From assembly GCA_002269645.1 (NCBI GenBank), contig NIVC01002696.1, forward strand, positions 18,278-82,277: 64,000 nucleotides of DNA. The letters are read 5' to 3'. Shown one piece after another: positions 9,373 to 28,759 of the stretch; within the stretch, counting starts at the first letter, position 1, and each line of letters starts with the position of its first letter. The notes beneath the pieces are model-generated. The model was not told the origin of the DNA and searched no databases. It saw nothing but the letters and a program-made list of their open reading frames with translations. The DNA comes from Macrostomum lignano (Eukaryota). The translations under genes were made by a program, and so were the position numbers.

Positions 9373-10063
9373 AATGTTGTTTCTAATTTGTCCGAGACTG
9401 ACCAACTATTTTGACACATCGCGATTCGAACTTGACTTGATTTCAGCAGCCGGCTCTCCGTTACTCATTCTATAATTCATATTTTTATCATCGAGCCATC
9501 AAAATATTCATTTCAAAATTTCAAACGAAATTTACAGACATTGATAGACTTTCCTAGAAATAATTGGCTTGCTGTGACCCTTCTGTTATTGTCCAATTTT
9601 GTTGTAAATATAGCTCCTCTACTACTCGTCATGACCAGTAGTATCTATGGTTCTATGGCCAAGCGTTTAAATAAACTGGAAAAAGGTTATAAGACAAGTC
9701 GATGAGTTCCATATTACAACACAAAGCGAGTTGTCTATGGCCTGTTTCTCGAGATAAATCCAACTCTTGGATTTTACAAAGACTTAAGTCTCTCTTTTAG
9801 GTTAGAGTGGAAATTAAACATTTATTGTCTCGAAATATAATTATTAATATAATTTGACAACTGTTCTACTGCTTATATTCTCAACTAAGTCCTACTCAAA
9901 CAAAACGCGTAAATAGTTGGGACAGGACTAGAAGTAATTTTGTGTTACGAAGTATATATCAAAAATATAATAAAATAGAAAGAAATAGAAGGCAAGTAGA
10001 ATATAAGACTACATAAACACTTTTAGCATCACCCCCTTGTCAGCAGACATCAGTGGGATATAG

Positions 10064-10345
10064 CAACTGGGATTAAAGCAACTGGGATTAAAGCAACTGG
10101 GATTAAAGCAACTGGGATTAAAGCAACTGGGATTAAAGCAACTGGGATTAAAGCAACTGGGATTAAAGCAACTGGGATTAAAGCAACTGGGATTAAAGCA
10201 ACTGGGATTAAAGCAACTGGGATTAAAGCAACTGGGATTAAAGCAACTGGGATTAAAGCAACTGGGATTAAAACAACTGGGATTAAAGCAACTGGGATTA
10301 AAGCAACTGGGATTAAAGCAACTGGGATTAAAGCAACTGGGATTA
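10064..10345. repeat. 15-bp minisatellite (gcaactgggattaaa)
   Basis: Perfect tandem copies. Confidence 0.95.
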
Positions 10346-10395
10346 TTTATAGCCTTCATAGTTCCGACTCAATTCAACCAGTTTTCACCAGAATT

Positions 10396-10464: not shown

Positions 10465-11289
10465 CTGCAGAGTGGTGTCTCAAAAACTCAAAAACTCAAA
10501 AACTCCATTTTTGGTTGACAGCGGCACGTTTTGAAGGAGAGGTGCTCAATTCCTGCTGCAGCAAGATTTTGTGAGCTAGCGGAAACTGCAAATTACTTCT
10601 TAAGCTATAGACAGCACTGAATCATTGTGCTTTTATTGAAAAAATGAAAAAACTTCGTCTCATTTAAGTGTGTAGTCACTGTAGTGTGTGATGCTCCAGC
10701 TTCTCAACTAACTATAGTTCTGAATCACACGGGTAGCTTCTTTCTGCACCCCACCCCCACTGCACGTGAGTCAGCTGTCAAAAAAGCATTGCCTTTTTTT
10801 ACCCCATCACCTCCGCCCATCATACTTCTAAATAGCTATAACAGCTTGACCGGCAAGGGTTTTGGGCCCCTTGCAAGATGAGGCCTGTTTTTCTAGACTC
10901 GAGTGCGATAGACTCGTAGCTTTAGGGCCTATAGCAGTTTTGCATTGAAGCTGAACAGAAACACAGTATTAGCTCGTAACTGGGAAGTGGAATGCTCTAT
11001 AGTTTTTTTGATATCGCAAACAATTTAAAGCTTTTTAAAAAACATTTATTTCTGAAAGTTTCTTTTCACTAACTTCGTAAACGAATATAGTAATTAATTC
11101 AATGTATTGAAACGCGCATAGACGTGAACGATTCAAAAACTGGGAGGGGGGCAGGTTCAGTGGCGGATTTATGGGGGGGGGTGGCGCACAGGGGGCACGC
11201 CCCCCCGTCGAGTTAGATTTTTTTATTTTTTTGTATGGAAAATGAACAGCATGTATGTACCAATAATTTTTGAATCGGTGTTGTCAGCA

Positions 11290-12329
11290 CTCATTTTAGC
11301 GCCGCAGGCACTCATTTTAGCGCCGCAGGCACTCATTTTAGCGCCGCAGGCACTCATTTTAGCGCCGCAGGCACTCATTTTAGCGCCGCAGGCACTCATT
11401 TTAGCGCCGCAGGCACTCATTTTGGCGCCGCAGGCACTCATTTTAGCGCCGCAGGCACTCATTTTGGCGCCGCAGGCATTCAGTTTGGCGCCGCAGGCAC
11501 TATTTTAGCGCCGACGGCACTCATTTTAGCGCCGTAGGCACTCATTTTGGCGCCGCAGGCACTATTTTAGCGCCGCAGGCACTCAATTTAGTGCCGCAGG
11601 CACTCATTTTGGCGCCGCAGGCACTCATTTTAGCGCCGCAGGCACTCATTTTAGCGCCGCAGGCACTATTTTAGCGCCACATGCACTATTTTAGCGCCGC
11701 GGGCACTCATTTTGGCGCCGCAGTCACTCATTTTAGTGCCGCAGGCACTCATTTTAGCGCCGAAGGCACTCATTTTGGCGCCGCAGTCACTCATTTTAGT
11801 GCCGCAGGCACTCATTTTAGCGCCGAAGGCACTCATTTTAGCGCCGTAGGCACTCATTTTGGCGCCGCAGGCACTATTTTAGCGCCGCAGGCACTCATTT
11901 TGGCGCCGCAGGCACTCATTTTAGCGCCGCAGGCACTCATTTTGGCGCCGCAGGCATTCAGTTTGGCGCCGCAGGCACTCATTTTAGCGCCGAAGGCACT
12001 CATTTTAGCGCCGTAGGCACTCATTTTGGCGCCGCAGTCACTATTTTAGCGCCGCAGGCACTCATTTTAGCGCCGTAGGCACTCATTTTGGCGCCGCAGG
12101 CATTCATTTTAGCGCCGCAGGCACTCATTTTAGCGCCGCAGGCACTATTTTAGCGCCACATGCACTATTTTAGCGCCGCGGGCACTCATTTTAGCGCCGC
12201 AGGCACTCATTTTAGCGCCGCAGGCACTCATTTTGGCGCCGCAGGCACTCATTTTAGCGCCGCAGGCACTCATTTTAGCGCCGAAGGCACTCATTTTGGC
12301 GCCGCAGTCACTCATTTTAGTGCCGCAGG
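11290..12329. repeat. 21-bp satellite (gcactcattttagcgccgcag), left part of the array interrupted by the Polinton
   Basis: Tandem copies; the array resumes at 30144. Confidence 0.95.
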
Positions 12330-12905
12330 AGTAGTAGTATGTTATAAAGGGTTGCGCCACACTTATTGCTCGGGCGCATTGCGCGCCAGCTCGCTGGATG
12401 ACTCAACCCTTTATAACATACTACTACTACCATGAGGTCATGGGTTCAAGTGGGGTGTGATAAATATAAAAATATATAAATATACATATATCTGTGACTG
12501 AGGGTGTTGAGGGTGAGGGCATGTGGGGGGCATTGGCCTGTGGTATATTTCTCAGAAGACAGAATTTCCGGATTTTTTATACTTTTAAAAAGGGGGGGTG
12601 CCCTCGCCCTCATGCCCTCACTCATTTTGAAAATCACTAAAAATAAGTGAAAAATGACTAAAAACAGGCGAAAATGGTCTGAAAACAGCGATTTTTTGTG
12701 ATTTTCAAAAATTTTGAAAAAGTGCAATTTTCACGATTCCAGCTCTAAAACCATGAGAAAAGTTGGATTCACGGGTCAATTTAATGCAATTTCAGGTATA
12801 TACAATATGAAAGTGTCATCCAATTCAACGATAGTAAATTATATATATATAAAATGGCCTTCAGTAAACCATTATTTCTAGGAAATGCTTTAGATATTCA
12901 GTCAG
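12330..12905 (+). repeat. Left terminal inverted repeat (576 bp) with a 99-nt terminal hairpin
   Basis: Near-identical reverse complement of 29568-30143; arms 12330-12354 and 12404-12428 are perfectly complementary. Confidence 0.95.
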
Positions 12906-15092
12906 CTATAACAAAACTACCACCCATCTTCGCCACTGGAAAATACCCAGGAGAACTTCATATTCCAGGGTATTCTTTTGCAGGTTACGTAGTGGCCTGA
13001 GTGAGGAAGTCAATGTCCTTGCTAGTCATCAAATAAGCACTTGTTAAAGTTTCTATAGTAAAAATGGAGCAAACAATTCGAGAAATTCTTCTGAAACCAA
13101 TTGATGATAAGGTTGGGCATGATCAAATTCTTCATGATCTTTTCCAAGAAGAGTTAATAATTTCACACAAGATTAAAGTTATTCAAATGAGACTAGGCAG
13201 ACTATATGAAATATTAGCAGAAAATTATTTTGGATTCGAGAAGGTAAAAAAGATAGACCTGGTTCACGTTGAGCGAAAGATTGCATTAGAGCTTAAATCT
13301 TCTGATAACACGGACAATTCATCAAGTCGTGAAAGGAATTATCAGAAACTATTAGACTATAAAAATTCTTATCCCACCTATCAGTTGTATTATGTATGCA
13401 TCAATAAAACTACAAAGGAACCTAAGAATATTTTACTAGACAATGGAATCACCCTTATAACAGGAGAATTTGCATTGAAATTTCTTTATGGTGATCAATA
13501 CAAAAACATTATAACCAACATTAAACAAGTGCTTAGTGATTGGCGACACCTTCAAATTGCGGGAACTCCGTCCGATTCTAGTACGTCAATAACAGCCTCA
13601 AGTACCACTTCAGTTGAGAAATCTTCTGAAGGAACACAGGTAATTCCTGTTCCCAATCGGACTTCGTCCGCGAACCTATGGTTCGATGGTAACAAGCTTG
13701 AGGACATGGTGGAAATCCGCAGCCAAGCTCCTAAGTCCGAACGAAGTTGACAAGGATATGGAGAAGGTTCAGAGACTTAATGGGGGTGGGGCTGAAGGAT
13801 CTGGTCAATCCTGATGAAGCCTTAAGATAAAGTCCAGCCTCTTTCGAAAGATTGAGGAACAACTGCCGGGTACAAATTTAGACAAGAGACTCAATCCAAT
13901 TACAGACCGGCCTCGGTATGACAGTCTACCAATTAACCCAATCGATTGGACTGCTTACTATCATGACAAAAACTATAGAGATGCTGAAAACACTTCTTCA
14001 AATCCAGAGGAAGCTCTAGCAAAGAAGCATATAGCTGATGAAAAAATGATAGCTGATTTAGATGCTATTCCAACCAGTGACTTGTCTGTGAAAGAGAGAC
14101 TCATTCGAAATCTAGTAAAGCGTATTATCAAGGCTAAAGTTCGGTTTGGATTAGGCATTCATACTCACAACCCCAACAATTGTATAGACTGTCTAACAAT
14201 TTATGGTAAGGGTCTTAGCTATGAAGATGCAGTAAAATTGCATAAAGAATATCGAAAGCCAAGAGTATTTAGAAAAATGATTCACTATGCAAAAGACACA
14301 ATTTGGCATGCAGATATCATTATCCTTCCTCCTGAAAGAGGTTACAAATATGCTCTCACTATCATAGATGGTTTTACACGTTACGCCTGGGCAGTTCCTT
14401 TGAAAACAAAGACGGGAGCGGAAGTTGCAGAAGCTTTCCAAAAAGTATTTAAGGAATCAGGAAGACGACCAGAGAGACTTTGTGTAGATGAAGGCAAGGA
14501 GTTTTATAATCAGCATATGTACAAGCTATATTCGTTTTCAAAAGACAACATTAGAAAGAAGGATGAAAAGGGTGAATATATAAACAAGATGTTTTCAATT
14601 TATGGCGAGTCCAAGAATGCAATGATTGAGAGGTTCAATCGTACTCTCACAAATAAACTCTGGTTTGAATTTGATCTACAGGGTAATCAGAAGTGGCTCC
14701 ACACATTGCCAGCTATTGTTGAAAAATACAACAACACAATCCATTCTGAGATTCTGATAACTCCTTCAGAAGCATCTAAACATCCTGAGCGAGTACCAAA
14801 GCCAACTTTCGAGTATTCAAATGAGAAACCAAACTTCAAAGTAGGTGACAAAGTTCATATCTATAGATATAAGGAGCACTTTGAAAAGGGTCGAAGAGGA
14901 TATTGGAAAATTTCAGAAGTGTTTAGGATAAAGAAAATAGTTTACTCAAATCCCATAACTTACATAATTGAGGATGAGAATGGAGAAGAAATCATTGGAT
15001 CATTTTACAAATCCCAGCTTCTACCAGCAAATTTTTCAACTAAAAATGAGCGCCTATCGAACAAACTGCAAACGGGCGAAAGGTCAGATTGA
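12854..15092 (+). CDS. Parvovirus-type PLA2 fused to rve (DDE) integrase; exons 12854-12985 + 13866-15092, ~452 aa after group I splicing
   Basis: Joining GCA GGT|CCG GGT restores GELHIPGYSFAGPGTNLDKRL, followed by PINPID..AYYHD..Y (PLA2 catalytic HD). The same frame continues into integrase motifs WHAD, VDEGKEF and IERFNRTL. Confidence 0.92.
12986..13865 (+). ncRNA. Group I self-splicing intron (IC1-like), 880 nt
   Basis: 5' exon ends in U12985, paired with G12995 in P1 (CAGGU/GCCUG); terminal G13865. P AAUUGCGGGAA 13555-65, Q AAUCCGCAGC 13714-23, R GUUCAGAGACUU 13767-78, S AAGAUAAAGUC 13824-34. P3 CACCUUCA/UGGGGGUG, P4 UGCGGG/UCCGCA, P7 GACUU/AAGUC, P8 GGGCU/AGCCU, P9 CCUC/GAGG, P9.0 AG/CU; large P5abc-like insert. 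Confidence 0.95.
13064..13750 (+). CDS. Intron-encoded PD-(D/E)xK endonuclease resembling the Eco47II/Sau96I restriction enzyme family (putative homing endonuclease)
   Basis: GRLYE helix, KIDL...ALELKS catalytic motif and NTDNSSS (cf. EIKNKxNTxNSS), then YYVCI and ITGEFAL. Starts in the loop closed by the stem 13034-45/13524-35. Confidence 0.75.
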   Translation: MEQTIREILLKPIDDKVGHDQILHDLFQEELIISHKIKVIQMRLGRLYEILAENYFGFEKVKKIDLVHVERKIALELKSSDNTDNSSSRERNYQKLLDYKNSYPTYQLYYVCINKTTKEPKNILLDNGITLITGEFALKFLYGDQYKNIITNIKQVLSDWRHLQIAGTPSDSSTSITASSTTSVEKSSEGTQVIPVPNRTSSANLWFDGNKLEDMVEIRSQAPKSERS

Positions 15093-15468
15093 AACGTCTG
15101 ATTCACAACTACTAGCTGATAAAGAGGGTGAAGGAATTGGTGATATGATCAGTGGTGTCACAAACTTTTTATCAAATCATGGAAGTAAAATTGTGAGTGG
15201 AGCTGATGCAATAGGTAAAACAGCTACCACAGCGAAGAACATATTCGATGCGAAGAAATCATACAGTGACATGTCTAAAGCAGGTGAGGAACTGGAATAT
15301 ATTAAAAAGAAACGTAGAGATAAAGAAGCAAAGAAAATAATGGAAGAAGAGCAACAGATAGCTTCTCAATCAAATAAGGCTATTCAAGATATTGTTAAAA
15401 AGGCTCTAGGAACAGCAGAACAGTCTCAAGTGTCTTTGAGACAAGGCAATGGTTTGAAGAAATTCTGA
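15046..15468 (+). CDS. Putative basic virion core protein with GxG motifs
   Basis: TAAAAATG start; EGEGIG and RQGNGL motifs; position in the structural module. Confidence 0.55.
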   Translation: MSAYRTNCKRAKGQIETSDSQLLADKEGEGIGDMISGVTNFLSNHGSKIVSGADAIGKTATTAKNIFDAKKSYSDMSKAGEELEYIKKKRRDKEAKKIMEEEQQIASQSNKAIQDIVKKALGTAEQSQVSLRQGNGLKKF

Positions 15469-15476
15469 CCTTAAAA

Positions 15477-15928
15477 ATGAGCGAGAAAAACACTGAAGCA
15501 AGACTCAATCGATATGTTCGAGAGGGAAAACCAAGATATGTTACTGTAAATAAGCAAAAGCAATATCTTTCTAAAGAGAAGATTCGAGAATTGCAAGAGA
15601 AACAGAAAGAACATGAAGGTGGAATAATTCCTCTATTAGGCTTGCTACCAGCAATTTTGGGTGGTATTGGAGCAGCCTCGGAGTTGGTACAATGATTGCA
15701 AAAAGTGTTAATACAGCCAACAATGCTAAGCATAATAAGACAATAGAAAGCATTGAACGGCAAAAACTAGAAGAGTTGAAAAAGGCTCAAGGGAGTGGAG
15801 TATTAGTTGATGCGGCTAAAAGAGTCGAACAAGTACCCAGCGAAGCAGTCAAGTGGCTGCTAAAGACGTTTAAAGTTGAAAAGGAGAAACAGGGTAATGG
15901 GATAATTCTTAGACCTCATGAAGCTTAG
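15477..15928 (+). CDS. Putative core/membrane-lytic (pVI-like) protein, frameshifted at 15680-15681
   Basis: EGGIIPLLGLLPAILGGIGAAS continues as GVGTMIAKSVN if one G is added, joining two ORFs into ~150 aa with GG/GxG motifs. Confidence 0.6.
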
Positions 15929-15948
15929 TTGAAATTTCTCTTATAAAA

Positions 15949-17313
15949 ATGGAGAACAAAAAGGATATACTGAGCATATATGAGGACAAAACTTTTAGCT
16001 TTTTCAAAAAGAAAGAAGACTATATTAAGATTTCTCCAACTCCAGGTAGCACTAATAATCTCAATGTTGCAGGAGGTCAAATAGTTCATGAAGTCAATTC
16101 AACAGAGTCATACATTCTCATGTCAGAGGCATTCGGTTGTATAAAATACTCAATAACACAACGAGATAACACCGACTTGAATACGAACATTACTCTAGAA
16201 CATAATTGGCCTATGAGACTTTTCTCTCAACTCATAGTTGACATTGGAGGAACAAAGAAAGTCTATAATGATCCTGGAGAGTATGACACAATCTTAAAGT
16301 CCGTAATGTACTCAAAATTAATGAATGAAGTTGGAGAAGCATACGGATGGATTCCAGACACTGGAGATGCTGGGACTGTTTCTGATATACCTCTAGCAAA
16401 CAACGCAGATGCTGAAGCTGTGAGAACTGCAGCAATCGCTATGAAAAATAGACTCAATAAGAAGGATTCGAATACTGGATACATTAGGAGGCTTGAAAAT
16501 TACAATAATGTCACTAATGCTCCAAACAGAGGTGGAACAATCAAACTATCATTAACACCCCTCATTGGGTTCCTTGATTGGCAGAAGATTAGCAAAGGAA
16601 TTAAATATAAATTCACATGGACAAGAAAGACTAACGATGCTGAAATTTTCTTTGGAGCTGCCGGGACGGAAGCTAAGTTAACTATTAATAGCTTTGAGAT
16701 TTGGATCCCTGCTATTACTTTGTCACCCAGTGCTGAAGCAGCTTTTCTAAAATCACTCAACAAGGACATTACAGTATCATTTCCAGAGAGGGTAACGGTT
16801 CCACCACAACTCATTCAAGGAAGTCCATATACATGGAACATAGCCAACATCTCCAATATGCCACTTGCAATCTTTGTAGCTTTCAAATATGACGTAAACA
16901 ACCCATCATATATAGTTAATGATCACAAGTATGTGTCTTACAAAACTGGAGCAAATTCAGTGAAAATAACCCAGCTTCAAGTCAGATTAAATCAGGTGAT
17001 GTATCCGAATGATTATGTTGAAATTGATCCAGTAGCTCAAGACATTCACAGAGCGTATGAAATGTACGAAGACATCTGCAGCCGTTTCGGTGTAACTCCT
17101 CCATTCAATAAACAAGACTTTCTAACCATCTATCCAATCTTTTGCTTTGATCTAACAGCTCAAGATGAGTTTCTGGTCAAGAGTGGAGTGAATATTCAAT
17201 TATTTATCAAGAAGTCAACAAATGTTGAGCTGACTGCTTTTGCACTAATTCTTGAACAAACAAAGAATGTAATAAAAGTTACCAGTGAATATCAAATGAC
17301 CCGCGTCGAATAA
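15949..17313 (+). CDS. Double jelly-roll major capsid protein (454 aa)
   Basis: Polinton MCP pattern: YIKISP..G..LN..G, LEHNWPMRLFSQ, PGEYDT, GYIRR, QVRLNQVMYP, YPIFCFDLT. Confidence 0.85.
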   Translation: MENKKDILSIYEDKTFSFFKKKEDYIKISPTPGSTNNLNVAGGQIVHEVNSTESYILMSEAFGCIKYSITQRDNTDLNTNITLEHNWPMRLFSQLIVDIGGTKKVYNDPGEYDTILKSVMYSKLMNEVGEAYGWIPDTGDAGTVSDIPLANNADAEAVRTAAIAMKNRLNKKDSNTGYIRRLENYNNVTNAPNRGGTIKLSLTPLIGFLDWQKISKGIKYKFTWTRKTNDAEIFFGAAGTEAKLTINSFEIWIPAITLSPSAEAAFLKSLNKDITVSFPERVTVPPQLIQGSPYTWNIANISNMPLAIFVAFKYDVNNPSYIVNDHKYVSYKTGANSVKITQLQVRLNQVMYPNDYVEIDPVAQDIHRAYEMYEDICSRFGVTPPFNKQDFLTIYPIFCFDLTAQDEFLVKSGVNIQLFIKKSTNVELTAFALILEQTKNVIKVTSEYQMTRVE

Positions 17314-17334
17314 GGTCATTTTTTCTTTTTTTAA

Positions 17335-18108
17335 ATGCCCAAAGTAAAATTTCGGCATGATCCTATTTTCCCTAATCCTCTTTTATGTTGTATTATCGGC
17401 GCTACAAATACGGGTAAAACATATTTACTATTCCATATTCTTACAAGTCCTGAAAAACTAGTTGACTTTAATGAGTTAGTTTTATATGTTCCCAGAGCAT
17501 CTCAAATGGATCCAGAGTATCAGTTTCTAAAGCATGGCTTTGAAAATGGTCTCCCACCTTCTCTTATCAACTCACTCTATCATGTCTACCAGGTGAGTGA
17601 GGATGCATCTCCTGAAGATATTAAGCATATTTGTAACGAGGCAGCCGACCTTGGTGGAGTGCAAAGCACATCAGAAAATTCAGAAGTAATAGAGAAAATT
17701 TCTGTCACTCTTTCCCATACTCCAAATGAAGAAATTTTTCATAATGGACTAAAGACATGTGTGATATTGGACGATGTTTTGGGAGAGGCTAATCAAACAT
17801 TTCAGGAAAGTCTGTTTCAGAGAGGCAGGCATGGAAACTGTTGTGGTTTTTATCTAGCTCAAAATTTTACCAAACTAGATCGCAATACTGTCAGGGAGAA
17901 TACGACATGTTACATAATCTTTAAACAAAAAGATACAAACTTAAATCACATTGCTAGAAATATAGAAACGAATTATGAACCCGCTATATTCAAGGCTAAA
18001 TGTAGAGAGGCTTGGAAAAAGAAGTATGGCTATATCTATATAAATACAAGAGCTGATGAGGATGAGCAAGATTTGTATAAGGATGTTCTAACTAAAATCC
18101 CATTGTAA
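17335..18108 (+). CDS. A32/FtsK-like genome packaging ATPase
   Basis: Walker A GATNTGKT, Walker B VILDD, RGRH, LAQ. Confidence 0.92.
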   Translation: MPKVKFRHDPIFPNPLLCCIIGATNTGKTYLLFHILTSPEKLVDFNELVLYVPRASQMDPEYQFLKHGFENGLPPSLINSLYHVYQVSEDASPEDIKHICNEAADLGGVQSTSENSEVIEKISVTLSHTPNEEIFHNGLKTCVILDDVLGEANQTFQESLFQRGRHGNCCGFYLAQNFTKLDRNTVRENTTCYIIFKQKDTNLNHIARNIETNYEPAIFKAKCREAWKKKYGYIYINTRADEDEQDLYKDVLTKIPL

Positions 18109-18110
18109 AA

Positions 18111-18842
18111 ATGACTAATGAATATATAAGAGAACTCATTAATTTAGCAAAGCAGCGAGAAATGTACAAATCCAGAAATGATGCTCAACGCTATTTGAAA
18201 ATTGGAGAAGAGAGTTTATATGCAAGAGTGGCTCCATTAGCTCAAAAACCTGTCACAGAAAAGCTCGATGAATTTATTGATGTCAATGCCAACCTTGTTG
18301 ATAAACTTCAGAATCAAAAAGTTCCAGTTCCGCAATCAAGTACACCAAAAGGCCGATTTGAACCCCTAGAAGTATTTGACAAAATAATTGAAGAAATTGG
18401 AAAGATTCCAATAACTCAAAGACCAGCGCCTAGTATACGGATTCAAAAAACTGATGCTGGATATATATTTGGATCATCTGTAATAGATGTTGAATTCCAT
18501 GAACAAGGTCGAGACATCATTGTCAATGAATTCCGAATGCCATTTTCTGAAGATCTTGAAGAGTTGTTCAAAATGCCTAAAGTAACTGAAAATGGTGAAG
18601 AGCTGAAGCAATTCAAGATGCAAACATTGCAGGATTATGTTAACCTCATTGAACATTGTAAAAATCCAGCGGCCAAATCAAGTGGGAATTATAAGCAAGC
18701 AGTAAGGATATTGAAAGATAATCCACCAGGATATCGAGTAAAACCGGGATCTGGACTCAGTGAAAGAGTGTTGACATTACTAGCCGCAAAAGCAGAGGGA
18801 CATAACAATGTTGATAAAGAGCTAGTAGAATTACTTGCTTAA
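18111..18842 (+). CDS. Conserved Polinton structural/core protein
   Basis: C-terminal GSGL...LL.AKAEGHNN..KEL motif typical of Polinton core proteins. Confidence 0.6.
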   Translation: MTNEYIRELINLAKQREMYKSRNDAQRYLKIGEESLYARVAPLAQKPVTEKLDEFIDVNANLVDKLQNQKVPVPQSSTPKGRFEPLEVFDKIIEEIGKIPITQRPAPSIRIQKTDAGYIFGSSVIDVEFHEQGRDIIVNEFRMPFSEDLEELFKMPKVTENGEELKQFKMQTLQDYVNLIEHCKNPAAKSSGNYKQAVRILKDNPPGYRVKPGSGLSERVLTLLAAKAEGHNNVDKELVELLA

Positions 18843-18844
18843 AA

Positions 18845-19637
18845 ATGGAAAAAGAAATAGAAAAAGTCAACATCCTCTTGAGTAAAAAGTTTCAACGCAC
18901 ATTTGACTTCTTTTCAATTAAAAACCCATTTCGACAAACTCTAGGCACTCCGATAAATTTGTATGAAGATCGAGAATACGAAGCTGGTATAAAAAAGTTT
19001 GCAGTCTTTGATGCTATTAACAATATTGAAGGAGGCAATAATGAGTTGCGATACTCGAGGGATAGTGGTAGAACATGGAAAAAAAATAAAGATTCAAGCG
19101 GGATCTTGGGAAGTTAAAAGTCTGTCAAGCGAGATTCAAAGATTGCTAACAGCTGCAAATGATTGGAAAGAGGGGGCTATTGTTTTCAGTGCAAGCCTAG
19201 ACACGCGTAGGGTTGAGTTACGGTTATCCACAGAGTATCAAGTTGATTTCAGGGATGCACATTCCAATAACTTTAGAAGACTGTTGGGATTCAATTCGGA
19301 AGTGTATTTGAAACCATTTGAGAGAGCTCCAAATCCAGCTCGGATAGACGGAGCTAGAAGTGCGATCATGGTTCGTTGTCTCAATATCAAAGGGGGTTTT
19401 ATCACTGATCCAGCCAATGGAGATCATTTAATTGATAAGCAAATACTTCTTTCAATTCCATCGTTCTCTGTCCCAATGGGAAGTAAAATTATTCAAGAAC
19501 CTGCAAATCCTGTGTACCTACCACTAACTACAAACATGTTGAGCACATTCGACTTTGTCATCGAAGATGAGTCTGGTGTTCTATACGACTTTGATGGCGA
19601 GGAAATATTTATAAATCTACACGTACGACAAATATGA
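18845..19637 (+). CDS. Minor capsid protein (penton), frameshifted in the A8 run 19079-19086
   Basis: PINL..REYEAG..INNI..NNELRYS.D.G.TWKK joins IKIQAGSWEV if one A is removed; C-terminal RCLNI, YLP and DFDGEEI motifs; ~263 aa. Confidence 0.85.
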
Positions 19638-19646
19638 GTGTTAAAA

Positions 19647-20077
19647 ATGAGCGAAGCTGAGACATGGAATGCATTTAAACAAAAGTTTGGGACTGACACT
19701 ACGACTAATATTGATCTGATAAATTGGGCAAAATATCTCAAGTTAAAACCATTTCGCTATGCCATGAGAGATGAAATTGTTGATTTACCACAGTATGGTT
19801 ACTTTATGACAAATATTCACACTTCGAAAGAACGGGGTATACATCATTCAGCTATATTTTCAGCTCCTGATAAGGTTTATTTTTTTGATTCCTATGCACT
19901 ACCACCCACACTGGAAATTATGGAAAAGTTTAATCACACAAAAATAGAATATGTGGAGACATGGAAGAACAAATTCAAACTTTTGATAAGAAATATTGTG
20001 GTCAAATGTCGCTGTACTTTTTACACCGAATCGATAAAGGAGATAGCTATAATGAAATTTTGCAGCAATTAAAATGA
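19647..20077 (+). CDS. Adenain-like cysteine protease, frameshifted in the A5 run 19940-19944
   Basis: GIH (His) and FFDSY (Asp); the alternative frame gives EQIQTFDKKYCG (Gln and catalytic Cys). Confidence 0.88.
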
Positions 20078-21423
20078 GTTACAAGAATACTGCCAATCAA
20101 TTTGGTTACTCGTCAAATTCAAATGATATAGCGCCTGGAATAACAATAGCGTTAGCTGATGATCGATACATCAATGAAAATGAAGGATATAAGAGAGAGG
20201 AAATAGATAATTTATTGTTAGCAAAGAGAAATGTTTCAGACTCTTATTCAAAGGAAGATAGTGACGCAATGAATATCACCATGCTACAATTAATTGACGA
20301 TGCTCATGGGCGCGTAAACAATGTCTACACAAAAACCGAAATTGACACTAAGATGTATTCTAAAACCGAAATTGACACTTTGTTAGCAGAAAGGCAAGGT
20401 ACTGTGGGGGGTACAGAGAGTTCGAAATTAGTCAATATTCTTTCATTACTGACTTCAAACGCTTCCGATCCTGACATGAAAGTGACCGCTTCTCATAACT
20501 CTTCAGCAGCATATCATGTTGCAGATTCAAACCCAGCTTCAGAATGGAGCAGTGTAGATGACTCAGACAAGTGGATACGAGTTCAATTTCTGAAAAGAGC
20601 TAGGAAAGTTGTAGAGATAAAGTTGGAAGGAGAGGTGTGGCCTGGTTGGTCTGTTAGTGTTAGTCTAAATGGAACAAACTGGACACCTGTTGAACAAAGT
20701 GCACCCATTGAACTACGAAGGGGCAATGCACATCTTAGGAAAAAAATACCCAATCCCTCATATTATTTTCATTATTCTCTTAATTTTTCTGGTTCCGTAA
20801 AGCTTACAAAAGTTGAATTACTTGAGAGACAAACAGTGGTTAATGATTTAGTGTGGCCTATAGATAGACTTCAAGCTGTACCAAAGCTATACGTAGACAA
20901 TGCACTTGAATCAGTGGAGCTGCGACTAAGGCGGGGACTAGGTTTCAAATCTTATACAGGATATATCCCCTCACTAGCAACACGTCAAAACTATAGAGAA
21001 AGGGGTTTCAATGTAGCGTCATCAGGAGCATTTGAAACGTCAGATAATTGGGGTTATATAGTATTTAATTCAGAATGGGCATCGAGGAATGAACCCAATT
21101 CTTACATTGAAGTACAACTTCCTGAATCTATTCAAATTTGGAAATTCGGATTGAAAGGAACCAAAGCAGTAGGTAGTGAAATTATAAAAAATCAACCAAA
21201 AAGTTTTATTCTGAAAGGGAGCAATAACAAGAGAGACTTTAGGAATATTTTTTCTACCGAAAATGCTGGTTTAGTTCCTGGAGTGATGAAATATTTTGAA
21301 GTAGCTTCCACCGAAAAATTCTCCGGTTATAGAGTGCATATTAATTCAGCCACTGAAGGATCAACTGTTCTTATTGTTTCAGGCTTTCAACTTTATCCGA
21401 TTTTAGACATAATTGTCACATAA
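20074..21423 (+). CDS. Putative fibre/receptor-binding protein with YTKTEID repeats and two discoidin (F5/8C)-like domains
   Basis: YSKEDSD/YTKTEID/YSKTEID shaft repeats; two SEW.S...W/Y-I-x-V-Q beta domains. Confidence 0.6.
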   Translation: MSYKNTANQFGYSSNSNDIAPGITIALADDRYINENEGYKREEIDNLLLAKRNVSDSYSKEDSDAMNITMLQLIDDAHGRVNNVYTKTEIDTKMYSKTEIDTLLAERQGTVGGTESSKLVNILSLLTSNASDPDMKVTASHNSSAAYHVADSNPASEWSSVDDSDKWIRVQFLKRARKVVEIKLEGEVWPGWSVSVSLNGTNWTPVEQSAPIELRRGNAHLRKKIPNPSYYFHYSLNFSGSVKLTKVELLERQTVVNDLVWPIDRLQAVPKLYVDNALESVELRLRRGLGFKSYTGYIPSLATRQNYRERGFNVASSGAFETSDNWGYIVFNSEWASRNEPNSYIEVQLPESIQIWKFGLKGTKAVGSEIIKNQPKSFILKGSNNKRDFRNIFSTENAGLVPGVMKYFEVASTEKFSGYRVHINSATEGSTVLIVSGFQLYPILDIIVT

Positions 21424-21514
21424 TTAGACATAATACCATAGTCACCATTAAAACACAACATAAGTACAAAAACTCCCAACGGGGTCAATAAACAAAAAAT
21501 TACTATCTTAGGAA

Positions 21515-21965
21515 GCTGGCAAGTAGGCAAACTTCACTCAGTGACTAACGCAGGAATTCGGGGTTGTATATTTTTCATCTACTTTTGCTACACACAGAAG
21601 CAATCTCGCAGAGCAATAATATGGTCGGCTATTGTCCGACCAAGATAGCAAAGCAAGTAGGCAAACTTCACTCGATGACTAACACAGGAATTCGGGGTTT
21701 TATATTTTTCATCTACTCTTGCTACACAGAAGCAAGCTCGCACCGCAACAATATGGTCGGCTATTGTTCGACCAAGATAGCAAAGCAAGTCTTTTTTTAG
21801 AGGCAAACTTCACTCGATGACTAACACAGGAATTCGGGGTTTTATATTTTTCATCTACTATTGCTACACAAAAGCAAGCTCGCACCGCAACAATATGGTC
21901 GGCTATTGTCCAACCAAAATAGCAAAGCAAGTAGGCAAACTTCACTCGATGACTAACGCAGGAAT
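21515..21965. repeat. Internal ~135-140-bp tandem repeat (three and a bit copies) in the element's intergenic region
   Basis: gcaagtaggcaaacttcactc...caggaattcgggg recurs at ~21519, 21653, 21785 and 21926. Confidence 0.9.
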
Positions 21966-22199
21966 TTGCCTCGACAAGAATTTGCCAAAATTTTGCCAGA
22001 AAAAAATATTTTTATTTTTTGTGCCACTTGGCACAGAATTGGCACCAATGAGAGGTTTCCGTTGTGCATTGTAAGTAAACCAACCAATAGGATTTAAGAC
22101 ACCGAAAAAATTGTTCTAGCAGCATTTAAAGCAGCATACAAATGGTTTCATCCAACCATCTATACATCCATCTTTTAAGCTAAATCTTATCTCTTAATC

Positions 22200-22631
22200 A
22201 TGCCAGGCCAGCCAACCTTGCGAGGTAGATTGCTTGCTATTAGAGCCGAGGAAAACAATATTAAGGGTATTTTCTATACAGAATACGCTAGGTCGTCATT
22301 TGCTCGCCTAATCCCAGATCCAACTGCGTTCGTCGATCATTATCGACAAAATCAGGAACGAATTTCTGATGATGCTCGTCTTCTTAAGTTACTTAAGAAG
22401 ATGTTGGCTAAGGAACGGACTGGGCGGCAATTACAGCGAGAAATCGCTGCTGCCGAGCAATTGAATAATGTGGCCATTCCTGATGCGCCACCAACCTATG
22501 AAGAGGCTCACGCTCAGCAGGCTCAGCAGGCGCAGGCTCACGCTCAGCAGGCTCAGCAGGCGCAGGCTCATGCTCAGCAGGATCATGAGATGGACGAACT
22601 TGTCCAACTAAACCAAGGCATTGGACAATGA
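22200..22631 (+). CDS. Hypothetical protein with PPxY motif and AHAQQAQQ repeats
   Basis: 143-aa ORF inside the element; PPTYEEA. Confidence 0.6.
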   Translation: MPGQPTLRGRLLAIRAEENNIKGIFYTEYARSSFARLIPDPTAFVDHYRQNQERISDDARLLKLLKKMLAKERTGRQLQREIAAAEQLNNVAIPDAPPTYEEAHAQQAQQAQAHAQQAQQAQAHAQQDHEMDELVQLNQGIGQ

Positions 22632-22843
22632 AGACTTGAGTTTCCACTGTATAAGTGTTTAAAGTAGTTATAACATCTCTAGAAATAAAATGAATTACTA
22701 TCATGCTAAATCTCTTTAAGCCAGGCCACAGAATGCTCCGCGGAGCCTGGCCATTTGTGTCTGAAAATATTTTCTTTTGTGTTCCCCCTTATTGTAAACT
22801 TCCACTCGAATCAGATTGTGACTGTTAAATTTTCCATAGAAAA

Positions 22844-23188
22844 ATGGAAGCTAATAACCCAAATGTTCGAAATGCTCTGCCACAAAAATATTATGATTCT
22901 ATTATAAATTTCTCTCAAATAAAAACACCCATTCGAAAGGCTCGACTAATTGCAGAAATTGATAAAGCTTACGATGAATATAAAGCAGAAATATTAAAAC
23001 ACACCGATTGTAAATGCCCCCCATATTTGTATTCATTCAGAGTATATCTTGCACATGTTGATAAATGGGCATTGATTTCGAGACAGCACATAAGGAATGA
23101 TGAATTTTTCGTCATGCTTAAGTTGAACATTTTCAAACTCCCCATAACCCTTGAGAAGTACATTGAAACTAATGAATTATATTGTTAA
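22844..23188 (+). CDS. Hypothetical protein (114 aa)
   Basis: AAAAATG start, co-oriented with the helicase; no recognised motif. Confidence 0.5.
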   Translation: MEANNPNVRNALPQKYYDSIINFSQIKTPIRKARLIAEIDKAYDEYKAEILKHTDCKCPPYLYSFRVYLAHVDKWALISRQHIRNDEFFVMLKLNIFKLPITLEKYIETNELYC

Positions 23189-23204
23189 ATTTATTTTAAA
23201 TAAA

Positions 23205-25670
23205 ATGGAAAGAAAAAATCAAAACGATTCAAGTTTCTCTCCTGTGATCGTACAGGATCCGCTTCAAAAACATGATGCCCCACCACCAAGATTGACAAAT
23301 TTAAAACAAACAAAATCGTACGATAAACTAATTAATCTCTATGGAGAACTTAATTTTAAATTCGGAAGTTGCAGTGTAACATGGAATAGTAAAACAAAGA
23401 AAAAAATACCGTCAGGAATGCCAAACAAAGCAGATAGGAATTCAACCTCCCCACCATTTCGACCAGAGGTAGACAACATGATTTGGATAGATACTAGAAA
23501 CTCAAATATAACCGTAATCGATATTGATAATGCTGACCTATGCCCTGAGTTGAATGAACTGTGTATGACTCATTGTGATTGGGTTGTTCAGACAAACAAG
23601 GGACACCACTTTTACTTTAACAAGGTAGATGGATTGAAAGTAACGATTCAACAAAGTGTGGGTTTTGATATTCCCGCCTTAGTATTTGCTCCACCAGGTT
23701 TCTATTATGTCGATGGTGAAATTAAGGAATACAAACGTATAAAGCCCGAAAGGTTAATAGACATGCCAGATGTAATTTTTAATGAGATAAATAGATTAAT
23801 TAAGCCACAGGATAAAAATGAAATCCAAGAACAAGATAAACAGGCACTAAAAAGCACCGTTCCACCACCCACTTGTGAAGGAGCTTCAAAGTTGTTAAGT
23901 ATAATACAACACAAAAACCAAGACTATGATTCTTGGTACAAGGTAGCACTTATACTCCGCGACATAGACAGTGGTGATGAAATGTACAAAGTATTCACTG
24001 ATTGGTCAAAAGTAAATTATGATAAGTTCGATTCCGAATCATGTAAAAAGGTGTGGAATAGCACCAATACCAGCTCTGCTGATGCACAGGACAGACTTAC
24101 TATCGGTACGTTGAAGAAATGGGCTAGTGAAGAAAATTATTGTAAATATAAGGAATGGAAAAGCAAATATGATTATTATGGTAGGATTGAGTATCTTGAT
24201 GATAATTTCACTGACGTTAACATAACCAACTTTGTTTATGAATATAAGAAGAATAATATAATTTACAATAGCGATGGTGTTTACTATTTTGATGATGATA
24301 AGTGGAGAGAACTAAGTAGTATAAATGACATATTTCTTAAAATATCAGACCTTGTTAGCGGTGAGTTAAACCACCGAAAGACTAGACTCGAAATTGCAAT
24401 TAAGAAGGCGGCTGATGATAAAGAAAAGTTAAAAGCACTTGAAAAGAAACTACAGAGTACAATCAAGAATATAAATTCAATACAAGGAGCCAACAAACTC
24501 AAACAGGTAACTACTTTGTTCAAAGAGAGGTTTACTAACAATGAAATTGAATTCGACATGAAATGGAATTTGCTAGGGTTTGATGATGGAGTATATGACC
24601 TCGATACAAGTGAGTTTCGCAAGCATAGATATGACGATTACGTTACTAAATCAGTGGGATATTATTACTCGGATGTACTTAGAGTGAGTGATGACGACTA
24701 TGACTTCATTGTTAATCTGCATAACCAAATTCATCCCGATCCAGAAAATAGAAAGAGTTGGGAATCCGTTATAGCCACAGCTCTAATGGGTAAGAATGTT
24801 GAAAACTTTATAATGTTTGATGGCGCTGGTGGAAATGGGAAGGGGGTTGAGGACAACCTACTTCTTAGAACTCTAGGATCTGATTATGCAGCACCACTGA
24901 GTCCTGATGTTTTGAATTTACCAATAAGAATAGACAGGCCACAACCAGCCCTAGCACAAATTAATAAAAAGAGGTTGGTTATCAGTCAAGAAGTAAGTGG
25001 TGTCTTGAACAATGCATCAATAAAATTACTAACTGGTGGTGGGGTTATCCAAGCTAGAAATTTATATTCAAGCCAGTGTAATGTCGTTTTACACGCAACC
25101 CTAATAGTCGAATGCAACAACAAGCCTGACTTTAGACAAAATATTGGAGATGCAGAAAAAAGACGAATTATAAATATTAATTACCCATGTAAATATACAA
25201 CAGATACCGACATCATTGATCATGCGAAACACATTTATAAAGCCGATTCATATCTTAAAACCGAGGAATTTAAGAATAAATATAAGTTTGCTGAGATGAA
25301 ACACCTACTAGAAATTTTCAAGCAAACAAAGGGTGAAATATATCTATCTCAAAATGTAATTCAAAACACTAATAAATTCATACAAAATTGTAATTGGTTT
25401 TCTCGCTTCTTTGAAGAGAATTATGAATTTTTAGAAACTGAGGAAAAAACATTTTTGCTTATTAGAGAAATTTACACTGCCGCAACAGAGAGTGAATACT
25501 ATAGGACTCTAGCCCAACGTGAGAAACGTGAATTCCAACAACAATACATAACAGATTTCTTCAAGAAACACAAAGACTATTTTAAGTATTATAAGGATAG
25601 ATATAGGCGTAGGATAGATGGTAAACAGCAAGAAACTAGAAATGTTCTGTTTTACTGTGTAAAAAAATAA
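23205..25670 (+). CDS. AEP/Prim-Pol primase - PriCT-2 - D5-like SF3 helicase
   Basis: TVIDID and TNKGHHFYF primase motifs; YDSWYKV...WS...KKVW...IGTLKKWA (PriCT-2); LLGFDDGVYDL (D5_N); Walker A GAGGNGKG; IKLLTGG, CNNKP. Confidence 0.88.
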   Translation: MERKNQNDSSFSPVIVQDPLQKHDAPPPRLTNLKQTKSYDKLINLYGELNFKFGSCSVTWNSKTKKKIPSGMPNKADRNSTSPPFRPEVDNMIWIDTRNSNITVIDIDNADLCPELNELCMTHCDWVVQTNKGHHFYFNKVDGLKVTIQQSVGFDIPALVFAPPGFYYVDGEIKEYKRIKPERLIDMPDVIFNEINRLIKPQDKNEIQEQDKQALKSTVPPPTCEGASKLLSIIQHKNQDYDSWYKVALILRDIDSGDEMYKVFTDWSKVNYDKFDSESCKKVWNSTNTSSADAQDRLTIGTLKKWASEENYCKYKEWKSKYDYYGRIEYLDDNFTDVNITNFVYEYKKNNIIYNSDGVYYFDDDKWRELSSINDIFLKISDLVSGELNHRKTRLEIAIKKAADDKEKLKALEKKLQSTIKNINSIQGANKLKQVTTLFKERFTNNEIEFDMKWNLLGFDDGVYDLDTSEFRKHRYDDYVTKSVGYYYSDVLRVSDDDYDFIVNLHNQIHPDPENRKSWESVIATALMGKNVENFIMFDGAGGNGKGVEDNLLLRTLGSDYAAPLSPDVLNLPIRIDRPQPALAQINKKRLVISQEVSGVLNNASIKLLTGGGVIQARNLYSSQCNVVLHATLIVECNNKPDFRQNIGDAEKRRIININYPCKYTTDTDIIDHAKHIYKADSYLKTEEFKNKYKFAEMKHLLEIFKQTKGEIYLSQNVIQNTNKFIQNCNWFSRFFEENYEFLETEEKTFLLIREIYTAATESEYYRTLAQREKREFQQQYITDFFKKHKDYFKYYKDRYRRRIDGKQQETRNVLFYCVKK

Positions 25671-25691
25671 ACGAAGATGTTATCAATGAGA

Positions 25692-28600
25692 TTACATTGG
25701 CTGATGAGGAATAGATCTGATAGGATCCAAATAATATCTTTTATCATCTAACGGACTCATTGTTTGTTTCATAATCTCACGAATATATATTTTATTTTTT
25801 TCAGATACAGTCATACTTACTCTACCTCTTTGAATATCTTTGTAATCTGTCAATAGTATGTTTTTAAAAGTTTCAAACTTTATATTTGTACTGCTTTTAT
25901 CAACCCCCTTGATCGTAACACACTCTCCTGAAACTGTAGTGAAAGCATACTCCTTTGACCGCAAGAATACAGCTTCGGAAATTATTGAACCATTCATTTC
26001 ATCTTTCAACTTTCCAATTACTTTCTTATTCTTCTCGGAGTATAGTGGATGCTCTCTTGGATAATCCGATGTGTCTAAGTGTTCTTTAACTTTTCCAAGA
26101 TCCTCATAAACATCCTGAGTAATCACTGAGAATATTAGCGAATCACAATCAGAATAGTGCAATTGACAGCTTTTCCAATTCTTCTCAATAAAATTGTAAT
26201 AGCAATCGTACATTAGCATTTTTGCATAATCCAGAATGGCCATCCCTAAATAAATTGGCTTGTCACACGCAATTGTCTTTTTGTACATTTGGATACCAAC
26301 TGCATCCTCACTAAACATAATGAAATCTTTGAAATTTGGTTTAGAAAAATAACGCCTTGCAGTTTTTTCTTCAGCTACAAGATGAAAGTTCGACCTATTC
26401 TTTACATTTTCGATTGTTTTACCGTAGAATGAGTTGTTTAGTAGTTTCCACAGGTCTTTCTCAAATTTAGTTTTTGCTTCTATTCTCCGCCTGGTATTAA
26501 ATTCGATGTATTTACTCAACCAGTTTGATTCTTTGAATGAAATAATTCTATGAACTCTCATAACTCGCATGCCCATCTTCTCATAAAACTCAAGTAGTCT
26601 GTGATGTAAAACATATTTCTCCTTGTTGTAAAATGTCAACATCAACTTGGATTGAACAAACTTTTTCTTTTCGACTTCGAGGTATTGCTTCTGTATGTCA
26701 GATAAATCCTCAAATCTAGTTGTTCGTTTCTCAGGAGCCAGTGGATATTTACTTGTAGCTTTCTTACATTCCTCTGTATATTGAAGGTCAACTTCAAGAA
26801 AACAACCCCTGCCATTAGGAATATTCTTGTGATACTCTAGATCATTTTCAAACTTGAAATCTCCCACAGGTAGATTTTTCATCATTGCTTCACCATATAA
26901 ATTATTCTTGTCCAAGTATAGCATGTACGACGATTCAGAATTGCTGTCATAACTTTCTAAATACTTGTTATTCATTTTTTTATATCGATCTCCAAGAACT
27001 CCAGAGAAACCGCCGCGAATACCACTTTCTACCATGGATATCATTTCTTTATCACCAAGTAATTCCAATTCCACATTAGTATATTTCAACCCACATGCCC
27101 ACGATAATCCAGAAAGGGAAAAGCAATACGCAGGATCTATCTTGAAATATTTCAAAAATGTTGATCGAAACTTCTCAAAAGCATTGACAAATGAGTAAAT
27201 CTTTCTAATTACTGCTGTTGTATCACTGGGTGGCAAATATTTTATTTCTTCTTCAGAGAGTGTAAATGGTGGTTCCAAAAACCTAGATCCATCTAAAAAC
27301 ACAACACCACTGGTATAATTCCCCACTTGATTGCAACATGGTCTTCAGATGTTTTAGAAATGAAATCCAATTTATACGCTGTATTCTTTATTCGTGTTAA
27401 TGGAACTATCAAATAGTTTAGATCTTTTCCAGATTCATTCAGAAGAAACAACGGTACTGTTTGATTCGCCTTGCCCTCCTTGGTATTACATGATTGACAT
27501 GCTGCGCCGCGATATTTACCATTGTAGTGATTATGCTCTCGAATTTTTTTACTATCTACAAATGGCCTTGAGCAGAGAAAACATTGTTCTGCCGCTTTGT
27601 AATCAGTCTCTTCGACATCACTTAAACTTGGATGTTTATATCTATCCATTTCATTTTTTATATGCTCAAACTTTTTTATTACGGTTTCAACGAATGATTC
27701 CACTGTAGTATTTGAAATAATATTTGATTTTATAATGTCCTCATAGTCGGAACTAGTAAAAAGTGTCCATTGTGATAGCTCTAGTGATTTATCATCCATC
27801 GTTACATAATCTAATATTGCATGAAACACAAATGGTTTTCTTACACTCATGTGGTAGTTTTTAAACTTTAATATCCTCTTATCAATCTTTGGAACTTCAA
27901 TTGACACTTTGAAGTCATTACAGATTGCTTTATGATTATCCAGTGCATCCTGGGAGTATTTGACTTGAAGACACTTTCGACAAAGAAAAACCCTGTTGTA
28001 ATTTTGGGACGTGAGGAATAAACACAAGTCTGTTATTAAGCAATAATGATTTTCAACAAGTAGTAAATCAATAACATTGGGGTTGTCGTAATCTTCTGTC
28101 AGACGAATAGAATATATTGACTCTTTAGTATTTATATCCCTCAATCCAAACACATTTATATGAAGACTGTTCAACTTTTCAATCTCAGAGATATCTCGAA
28201 TGTCCACTGGAAATTTAACGTCTCCTAAGTTTATTTCATTTATATACTGTGTATACTTACCAACTCTATATCTATGTTCCTTCACAGGATGGAGCTTTGC
28301 TAAAATAGACCAGAGAAAGCACCTATTGTCTGTAGTGTTCTTAACATTTACTAATGCGTTTGATTTAATTCGAATTTGAATATAAGTTCCTCCTTTCAAC
28401 TGATTAATGCCAACAACTTTCAACACAATCTTTACTAACTTAACAAAATAATATCCTGATCCCCTTTCATTAAAGCTATCCTTCCATCCATCGAATTCAT
28501 CCAGAATATCCTGAATTGTACTTTCTATACTAGTTTCCACTTGGAGAAGATTTAACAAAGTTCGATACTTTGAATGATATTGGAACTCAATCCAACTGTC

Positions 28601-28759
28601 GGTAGTTCCTTTATAAAATTCTGCGACAAAGGAAATTCTGTATTTTATTGAATCTCTAGCCATCAAATATTCGGAAAGAATTGGGGAGATTAAACCGCGA
28701 ATTTCTTCAACGGAGTCGAGATCAAATTCATAAGAGGCCGCTGGTATTTTCCTTTCCAT
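25692..28759 (-). CDS. Protein-primed family B DNA polymerase, frameshifted at 27321-27324
   Basis: N-terminal GSGY...NVKN..DNRCFLW region, EndoVII-like C..C...HNH..G.YRG.AC..CN, motif A YLDKNNLYG, B KLLNNSFYG, C YSDCDS, KxY LRSKEY; one added G fuses the two ORFs into ~1022 aa. Confidence 0.92.

Follow-up and report, generated by a model that had tools for sequence, protein, structure and literature searches.

The window analyzed here is a stretch of 64,000 nucleotides from Macrostomum lignano (assembly GCA_002269645.1, contig NIVC01002696.1, positions 18,278 to 82,277 of the forward strand). It includes a young Polinton/Maverick-type element, in which the PLA2-integrase gene is split by a group I intron carrying an open reading frame related to restriction enzymes. 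The main features are as follows (window coordinates).
12330-30143 (no strand assigned), Polinton/Maverick-type element with termini AG...CT, inserted into a 21-nt satellite.
12854-12985 (+), exon 1 of the PLA2-integrase gene, ending ...TCT TTT GCA GGT (Gly).
12986-13865 (+), group I intron of 880 nt, ending in G.
12981-12999 (+), P1 helix, in which exon CAGGU plus intron UAC pairs with the internal guide GUGGCCUG.
13043-13054 (+), promoter-like motif GTTAAAGTTTCT, about 10 nt upstream of the nuclease ATG.
13064-13561 (+), predicted nuclease domain (residues 1-166) of the intron ORF, which extends to 13750.
13562-13750 (+), C-terminal tail of this ORF (residues 167-228), read through ribozyme core helices and predicted to be disordered.
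13545-13865 (+), ribozyme core, P3 to P9, up to the terminal G.
13866-15092 (+), exon 2 of the PLA2-integrase gene, starting CCG GGT (Pro-Gly) and carrying the HD PLA2 motif, the rve core and a C-terminal domain.

The element is bounded by 582-nt terminal inverted repeats (12329-12910 and 29563-30144), which are 99% complementary, and by a 6-bp target-site duplication, CGCAGG (12324-12329 and 30144-30149). It encodes a double jelly-roll capsid protein, an A32-type ATPase, a primase-helicase, a protein-primed PolB, found in two overlapping ORFs, and an rve integrase. A 144-aa ORF sits in the position usually held by the protease, but it had no Pfam hit. The PolB bears an HNH, which suggests the pPolB2 group reported from nematodes, oomycetes and molluscs (PMC10748475), although this is only a hint. 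The ORFs flanking the element gave only a PDZ domain and a weak HUH-Rep match.

The intron is recognized by the Rfam covariance model RF00028 with 88.9 bits against a gathering score of 50 (model positions 1-253). Joining the two exons gives the junction GCA GGT|CCG GGT (intronless junction GCAGGTCCGGGT), inside the Gly-Pro codons, and an uninterrupted 452-aa PLA2-integrase reading ...GYSFAGPGTNL...YYHDKNY. If the intron is not removed, the exon-1 frame reaches a TGA 15 nt into the intron (ORF 12854-13000). Homologs of the integrase carry PF08398 plus PF00665. Homologous introns were found at the same GGT|CC in six further loci (L001, L002, L003, L007, L018 and L102, the L numbers designating the related loci collected for comparison). 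The introns of L001-L003 fall below the Rfam gathering score and lack or shorten P9, but they align and covary. Over the alignment, 27 of 73 core pairs show compensatory changes. A U12985-G12995 wobble sits at the 5' splice site, and all five complete introns end in G. Of note, P1 covaries with the exon sequence, since exon CAGGT goes with guide GCCTG in the window, L007 and L018, and exon TAGGT with guide GCCTA in L001, L002, L003 and L102.

The intron ORF (13064-13750, 228 aa, ATG start) matches only RE_Eco47II (PF09553) in Pfam, with 30.1 bits against a cutoff of 25.9 (E 4.6e-7), and no LAGLIDADG, HNH, GIY-YIG or His-Cys family was found. Among 16 homologs, 15 match this family at E <= 0.01 (best 2.6e-8), whereas NCBIfam gave no match for the nucleases. 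The residues D65, E76 and K78, which lie in the motifs IDL...ELK followed by TDNSSS, are invariant or nearly so across the 16 homologs, and the predicted PD-(D/E)xK fold also includes E49. The AF2 model is confident for residues 1-166 (pLDDT above 90), with pLDDT below 50 in the tail. The tail overlaps the Rfam core alignment, and the stop codon position varies among homologs. Sequence and profile searches of the PDB gave only chance hits, and no member of the family has a solved structure that sequence search can find. The best Foldseek match in the PDB is EcoO109I (PDB 1wtd/1wte; E 6.9e-5, probability 1.0, TM 0.54/0.47), an enzyme that cuts RG^GNCCY (PMC7337904), and the top matches are type II restriction enzymes. 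A dN/dS of 0.13-0.18 among homologs indicates purifying selection. The motif upstream of the ATG is shared with the capsid, ORF114 and PolB genes, but the pattern was derived after seeing these sites and is thus only suggestive.

The element has no GGNCC, against 19.4 expected with a mononucleotide model, 20.8 with a dinucleotide model and 10-13 with a Markov-3 model. This is the lowest of all 256 XYNZW patterns. In contrast, CCNGG (20), GGCC (20) and GGNNCC (18) are at expected levels, on which basis a mutational bias was rejected. Synonymous-codon shuffles give 8.0 +/- 2.7 GGNCC, with a minimum of 2 in 500. The proteins of the element contain a single Gly-Pro dipeptide, the split one, against 9.1 expected, whereas Pro-Gly occurs 12 times. 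A GGWCC (AvaII-like) or RGGNCCY specificity was also considered and rejected, since GGSCC is absent as well and all flank contexts are purged. The host flanks carry 40 GGNCC sites in 46 kb and, like the distant Polintons L100 and L101, show no purge.

Pooled intron-bearing elements contain 1 GGNCC against 35.4 expected, and intronless clade members 3 against 21.9, all 3 being the PLA2 Gly-Pro codons. L005 and L099 have changed the motif from GPG to GAQ. Expected counts in the AT-rich relatives are small (3-6 each), so that the strong statistics come from the window and from pooling. In addition, GGNCC is avoided in clade members that lack the window-type nuclease (L006, L098, L099). The purge therefore cannot be pinned to the resident gene alone and needs exposure to nuclease-bearing relatives. 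Interestingly, a sister nuclease subfamily (L004, L005) goes with a purge of a different pentamer of the same shape, AGNCT (2 against 35.6 expected and 0 against 29.1), which window-type elements do not avoid (63 against 62.7). L004 carries a family member and still has the GGGCC site, which is explained only if its divergent enzyme has another specificity. An attempt to link the loop after ExK to the avoided pentamer in giant-virus-like contigs failed: all share NTDN(S/A)SS, they are AT-rich, which leaves the test little power, and they are methylase-protected.

Seven intron-bearing and at least seven intronless loci were found. L003 (intron-bearing) is 92% identical in its integrase to L006 and L098, which are intronless and come from the same sample. 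It matches L006 at 97-100% from -150 to -31, but 10 differences are found in the last ~25 nt before the intron, where L003 matches other intron-bearing alleles. This looks like a co-conversion tract, although it is a single case and the direction (gain or loss) is inferred. Relatives of the nuclease outside Polintons have a C5 methylase within 120 nt in 38 of 38 cases, as against 0 of 9 Polinton loci (the window and eight related loci), and no MTase domain was detected in any element ORF of 114 aa or more. Scans of viral contigs with the single capsid and integrase proteins found no relatives, tblastn against plasmids gave nothing, and the cluster members examined for distant homologs carried no informative names.

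The initial annotation had proposed that a GGNCC-type restriction enzyme serves as homing endonuclease, targets the invariant Gly-Pro codons of the PLA2 YxGPG motif, and has its site destroyed by the intron. The underlying observation is confirmed and each checkable part of this interpretation was supported. Three things were not foreseen, namely that the enzyme is a methylase-less offshoot of canonical R-M pairs, that the whole element genome is site-free, which is what makes a 5-bp cutter locus-specific, and that a sister subfamily goes with a purge of AGNCT.

The explanation that we consider likely is that the intron ORF encodes a dimeric, type IIP-like restriction endonuclease of the Eco47II/Sau96I family that recognizes GGNCC, without a partner methyltransferase. 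The element would protect itself by having no GGNCC anywhere, through purged synonymous sites and removal of Gly-Pro dipeptides from every protein. One site cannot be removed, because Gly-Pro codons always spell GGNCC: the Gly-Pro of the PLA2 YxGPG motif, which is split by the intron carrying the nuclease gene. When an intronless relative is present in the same cell, its only GGNCC would be this site. Cleavage there, followed by repair from the intron-bearing copy, would transfer the intron and the nuclease gene (homing). The same enzyme would also cut host DNA and unrelated rival DNA. GGNCC cleavage by this protein is inferred from family membership and site avoidance, and splicing in vivo and homing are likewise inferred. 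The window protein is only 28-37% identical to the methylase-linked relatives, a distance at which specificity can change. It is also unclear how an internal ORF in a group I intron would be expressed in a eukaryotic cell, and some integrated copies are decaying, with a stop codon in L001 and a frameshift in L002.

A less likely alternative is that the nuclease is mainly a viral weapon against host DNA or competing viruses, as chlorovirus and marseillevirus restriction enzymes are thought to be, the intron being chiefly a self-immunity device that removes the last unavoidable site, with homing incidental or absent. The GGNCC sites in the host flanks, the canonical R-M pairs of the same family in giant-virus-like contigs, the free-standing family members in related Polintons (L004, L005) and the gene-like upstream motif are in line with this view. 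However, it does not by itself explain why the gene sits inside the intron in seven loci, nor the mosaic tract beside the intron in L003. L005 and L099 removed the site simply by changing GPG to GAQ, so that an intron is not needed for immunity. This view is compatible with homing rather than exclusive of it.

It appears unlikely that the ORF is a conventional homing endonuclease with a long, degenerate target centered on the junction, the purge being caused by some other nuclease from the host or another virus. The PD-(D/E)xK homing endonuclease I-Ssp6803I does seem to have a long target (reviewed in PMC3384342), and GGNCC avoidance extends to clade members without the window-type gene. Nevertheless, four independent pointers to GGNCC (the Pfam family, the EcoO109I fold match, the genome-wide purge and the insertion at GGT|CC) would have to coincide by chance. 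Exon sequences flanking the junction differ among intron-bearing lineages beyond GGTCC (TTTGCA-GGTCC-GGGT, TTTACA-GGTCC-AGGT and TATTTA-GGTCC-CGGT), the host flanks show no avoidance, and the nuclease subfamily tracks the purged pentamer. That the ORF is an inactive relic, inherited vertically in decaying elements, is very unlikely despite the lesions in L001 and L002, an LTR retrotransposon in L003 and the two overlapping PolB ORFs of the window, given the intact window ORF with invariant catalytic residues, the low dN/dS, the recent insertion indicated by the TIRs and intact target-site duplication, and the complete purge.

Several known systems can be compared. Eco47II and Sau96I, which are 33% identical homologs (PMC3045609), share the sequence family, the D...ExK motif and the inferred 5-bp interrupted palindrome GGNCC with the intron ORF, which differs by the lack of a cognate C5 methyltransferase, its location in a group I intron of a eukaryotic Polinton, and self-protection by total site avoidance rather than methylation. 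EcoO109I has a recognition sequence with a GGNCC core, but it belongs to a separate family (12-13% identity), has a permuted active site (EPD-XXK, PMC3424549) and reads the flanking R/Y bases, and the window junction AGGTCCG does not fit RGGNCCY. I-Ssp6803I is a restriction-like PD-(D/E)xK enzyme encoded in a group I intron, of a cyanobacterial tRNA, and cuts the intronless allele. No similarity to it was detected, either in the PDB profile search at E <= 10 or among the top 50 Foldseek matches; it is bacterial and appears to have a long target site, whereas here locus specificity would come from purging a short one. The situation also recalls collaborative homing, with F-CphI and the psbA intron of cyanophages (Bonocora and Shub model, cited in PMC11296320), since a family member is free-standing immediately upstream of the integrase gene in L005, while in other lineages the gene is inside an intron in that same gene. 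However, the free-standing copies are only 28-32% identical to the intron-borne ones and go with avoidance of AGNCT, so they are not direct precursors. Lastly, chloroviruses and marseilleviruses carry restriction enzymes but keep their methylases. Group I introns have already been recorded in polinton-like viruses (PMC12220804), but these are 309-376 nt, lie in another gene and have no annotated endonuclease. The supplements of that study contained no Rfam or Pfam identifiers.

A broader reading, which we hold as only slightly more likely than not, is that a methylase-less type II restriction enzyme has become the homing endonuclease of a group I intron in a lineage of eukaryotic Polinton viruses, with single-locus specificity arising not from a long recognition site but from purging every other GGNCC from the genome, Gly-Pro being eliminated from the whole proteome. 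The only site left in any relative is then the invariant Gly-Pro of the PLA2 motif. Sister enzymes in the same clade would impose the AGNCT purge, to our knowledge an unrecorded restriction specificity, and this implies a running nuclease arms race among co-resident Polintons. Practical leads are small (about 165-aa) methylase-independent enzymes and the candidate new specificity AGNCT.

Restriction enzymes and homing endonucleases share folds, but living intermediates between the two lifestyles are scarce, and this case would be one. The same protein family occurs as canonical R-M pairs in giant-virus-like contigs, as solitary free-standing genes in Polintons and as an intron-borne gene. The case would place a mobile group I intron with its own endonuclease in a protein-coding gene of a nuclear-integrating eukaryotic virus, such an endonuclease not being reported in the papers searched. 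It would also show a second route to homing specificity, through depletion of a short site from the genome instead of lengthening of the site, and give an unusually clean example of a nuclease shaping a proteome, through the loss of Gly-Pro dipeptides.

The integrase gene of the Polinton/Maverick-type element found in the window is split in two, and the main features of the element and of its surroundings are as follows.

11200-12329 and 30144-30500, 21-nt satellite (unit about GCGCCGCAGGCACTCATTTTA), which continues on both sides of the element.
12330-30143, Polinton/Maverick-type element.
12330-12430 and 30032-30156, imperfect palindrome of about 100-125 nt inside the TIR at each end of the element, which could form a terminal hairpin.
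12854-12985, exon 1 of the integrase gene.
12986-13865, group I intron, as placed here.
13064-13750, intron ORF.
13866-15092, exon 2 of the integrase gene.
25692-28759, minus strand, protein-primed PolB.
33771-40106, plus strand, uninterrupted 2111-aa ORF in higher-GC DNA.

The TIRs are 582 nt long and 99% complementary. The termini are AG...CT, and the element, inserted into the satellite, is flanked by a 6-bp target-site duplication, CGCAGG. Other long tandem arrays lie at about 10000-10360. The element encodes a double jelly-roll capsid protein, an A32-type ATPase, a primase-helicase, a protein-primed PolB and an rve integrase. Of note, PolB is found in two ORFs that overlap by 34 nt (27293-27326), which suggests a frameshift or a sequencing error, and its N-terminal part carries an Endonuclease VII/HNH insert (residues 389-434), as described for the pPolB2 Polintons of nematodes, oomycetes and molluscs. 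The 2111-aa ORF has only a weak, sub-threshold match to an HUH replication protein (Phage_CRI), and may be another mobile element. Once joined, the two integrase exons give a 452-aa protein, in which a parvovirus-type PLA2 motif (YSFAGPGTNL...YYHDKNY) is fused to the integrase. Most homologs carry PF08398 plus PF00665 in one uninterrupted ORF.

The intron is matched by Rfam RF00028 at 88.9 bits, the gathering score being 50. The P1 helix pairs exon CAGGU plus intron UAC with GUGGCCUG, with a U-G wobble at the splice site, and the intron ends in G. Without splicing, the exon-1 frame stops 15 nt into the intron. Homologous introns sit at exactly the same position, GGT|CC, in the related loci L002, L003, L007, L018 and L102, whereas a further one, L001, shows the 5' end only. 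These loci come from four different samples. P1 covaries with the exon sequence (CAGGT with GCCTG, or TAGGT with GCCTA), and 27 of 73 predicted core pairs show compensatory changes.

The intron ORF starts 79 nt into the intron, after P2. It is assigned by Pfam to RE_Eco47II (E 4.6e-7, above the gathering score), and 15 of 16 members of its close family also match. E49, D65, E76, K78 and the TDNSSS loop are invariant or nearly so. The AlphaFold model has a pLDDT above 90 for residues 1-166, whereas residues 167-228 are predicted to be disordered; they are simply the reading of the ribozyme core. No solved structure could be detected by sequence. By fold, the best PDB match is EcoO109I (E 6.9e-5, probability 1.0), which cuts RG^GNCCY (PMC7337904). 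Eco47II and Sau96I, which probably both recognise GGNCC, are 33% identical homologs (PMC3045609). The ORF is under purifying selection, with dN/dS 0.13-0.18 between L002, L003 and L102. Some integrated intron-bearing copies are decaying (L001 9809-10285, L002 7421-7924, L003 6343-9975): the L001 nuclease has an in-frame stop, L002 has a frameshift near codon 141, and the L003 element is interrupted by a Ty3/gypsy-type retrotransposon.

The key new result is the purge of GGNCC from the window element. No GGNCC is present in its 17.8 kb, compared with expected counts of 19.4 (mononucleotide model), 20.8 (dinucleotide model) and 10-13 (Markov-3). GGNCC is the most depleted of all 256 XYNZW patterns, the next lowest containing CpG and sitting at a ratio of 0.36. 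In contrast, control patterns are at expectation (CCNGG 20, GGCC 20, GGNNCC 18). With protein sequences held fixed, synonymous-codon shuffles give 8.0 +/- 2.7 sites, and never fewer than 2 in 500. Interestingly, Gly-Pro occurs only once in 5229 residues, against 9.1 expected, and this one is split by the intron, whereas the reverse dipeptide, Pro-Gly, occurs 12 times. Gly-Pro codons always spell GGNCC, and the purge has therefore reached the amino-acid sequence.

GGNCC sites, observed / expected, in the window element, in related and distant loci and in host flanks.
Intron-bearing elements (window, L002, L003, L007, L102): 1 / 35.4
Intronless clade members (L004, L005, L006, L098, L099): 3 / 21.9
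Distant Polinton, 41% identical integrase (L100): 11 / 16.1
Distant Polinton, 38% identical integrase (L101): 9 / 16.9
Host flanks of five related loci (L002, L005, L006, L098, L099): 43 / 40.2

The single site in the intron-bearing group is in L003, the copy disrupted by an LTR retrotransposon. All three sites in the intronless group are the PLA2 Gly-Pro codons (L004, L006, L098). In the two other intronless integrases, L005 (10001-11356) and L099 (8871-10280), the otherwise conserved PLA2 loop GPG has been changed to GAQ, which removes the GGNCC site at the level of the amino-acid sequence and may cost PLA2 activity. The target site exists therefore in three states: intact, split by the intron, or mutated away.

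Evidence for mobility was also obtained. Intron-bearing alleles occur in at least four integrase lineages, interleaved with intronless ones. L003, with the intron, is 92% identical in its integrase to L006 and L098, without it, all three being from sample ERZ25070786. L003 equals L006 at 97-100% across exon 1 from -150 to -31, but has ten differences in the last ~25 nt before the intron, where it matches other intron-bearing alleles. This looks like a co-conversion tract, although it is a single case and the direction (gain or loss) is inferred.

As regards the origin of the enzyme, 317 relatives were found by a profile search. Many lie on giant-virus MAG contigs or on contigs that look like giant viruses (among L008-L097, for example L020 9848-11544, L047 9385-11172 and L051 9857-11604). 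In 38 of 38 such loci with enough flanking sequence, the nuclease is paired with a convergent C5 cytosine methyltransferase within 120 nt. These are classical R-M pairs, and several of these contigs are rich in GGNCC. Many also strongly avoid CTNAG, GANTC, CANTG or GTNAC. In contrast, none of the nine Polinton loci has a C5 methylase.

A second, free-standing Eco47II-family subfamily occurs in related Polintons (L004 8135-8722, minus strand; L005 9441-9974, plus strand; also L099, L006 and L098). It is 28-32% identical to the window type (hhalign probability 99%), its TDNSSS loop is replaced, and in L005 it lies just upstream of the integrase gene. It coincides with a strong avoidance of AGNCT (2/35.6 in L004, 0/29.1 in L005 and 6/40.1 in L099); a restriction enzyme with this specificity would, to our knowledge, be unrecorded. 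Window-type elements do not avoid AGNCT (63/62.7). The nuclease subfamily therefore tracks the purged pentamer. One intronless relative, L006, also encodes an unrelated PD-(D/E)xK protein (19733-20116, plus strand; PF13366, E 1.7e-21). Nuclease genes therefore seem to be recurrent cargo in this Polinton clade.

Group I introns have already been noted in polinton-like viruses, but without endonucleases (PMC12220804), and PD-(D/E)xK homing endonucleases are known from bacteria (PMC3384342). No description of an Eco47II-family intron endonuclease, or of this site-purge logic, was found in our literature searches. The most economical reading is that the intron ORF encodes a methylase-less restriction enzyme that recognises GGNCC, although this specificity, like cleavage, splicing and homing, is inferred, and defence or offence, rather than homing, may be its main role. 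As regards its expression, a shared motif, GTTDAADTTTYY, lies about 10 nt upstream of the start codons of the nuclease (13043-13054), the capsid protein (15928-15939), ORF114 (22824-22835) and PolB (28769-28780); it is a candidate promoter or initiator element of the Polinton, but the pattern was derived post hoc. In this reading, the carriers of the enzyme survive by having no sites, and the last unavoidable site is both disarmed and exploited by an intron that carries the enzyme's gene.
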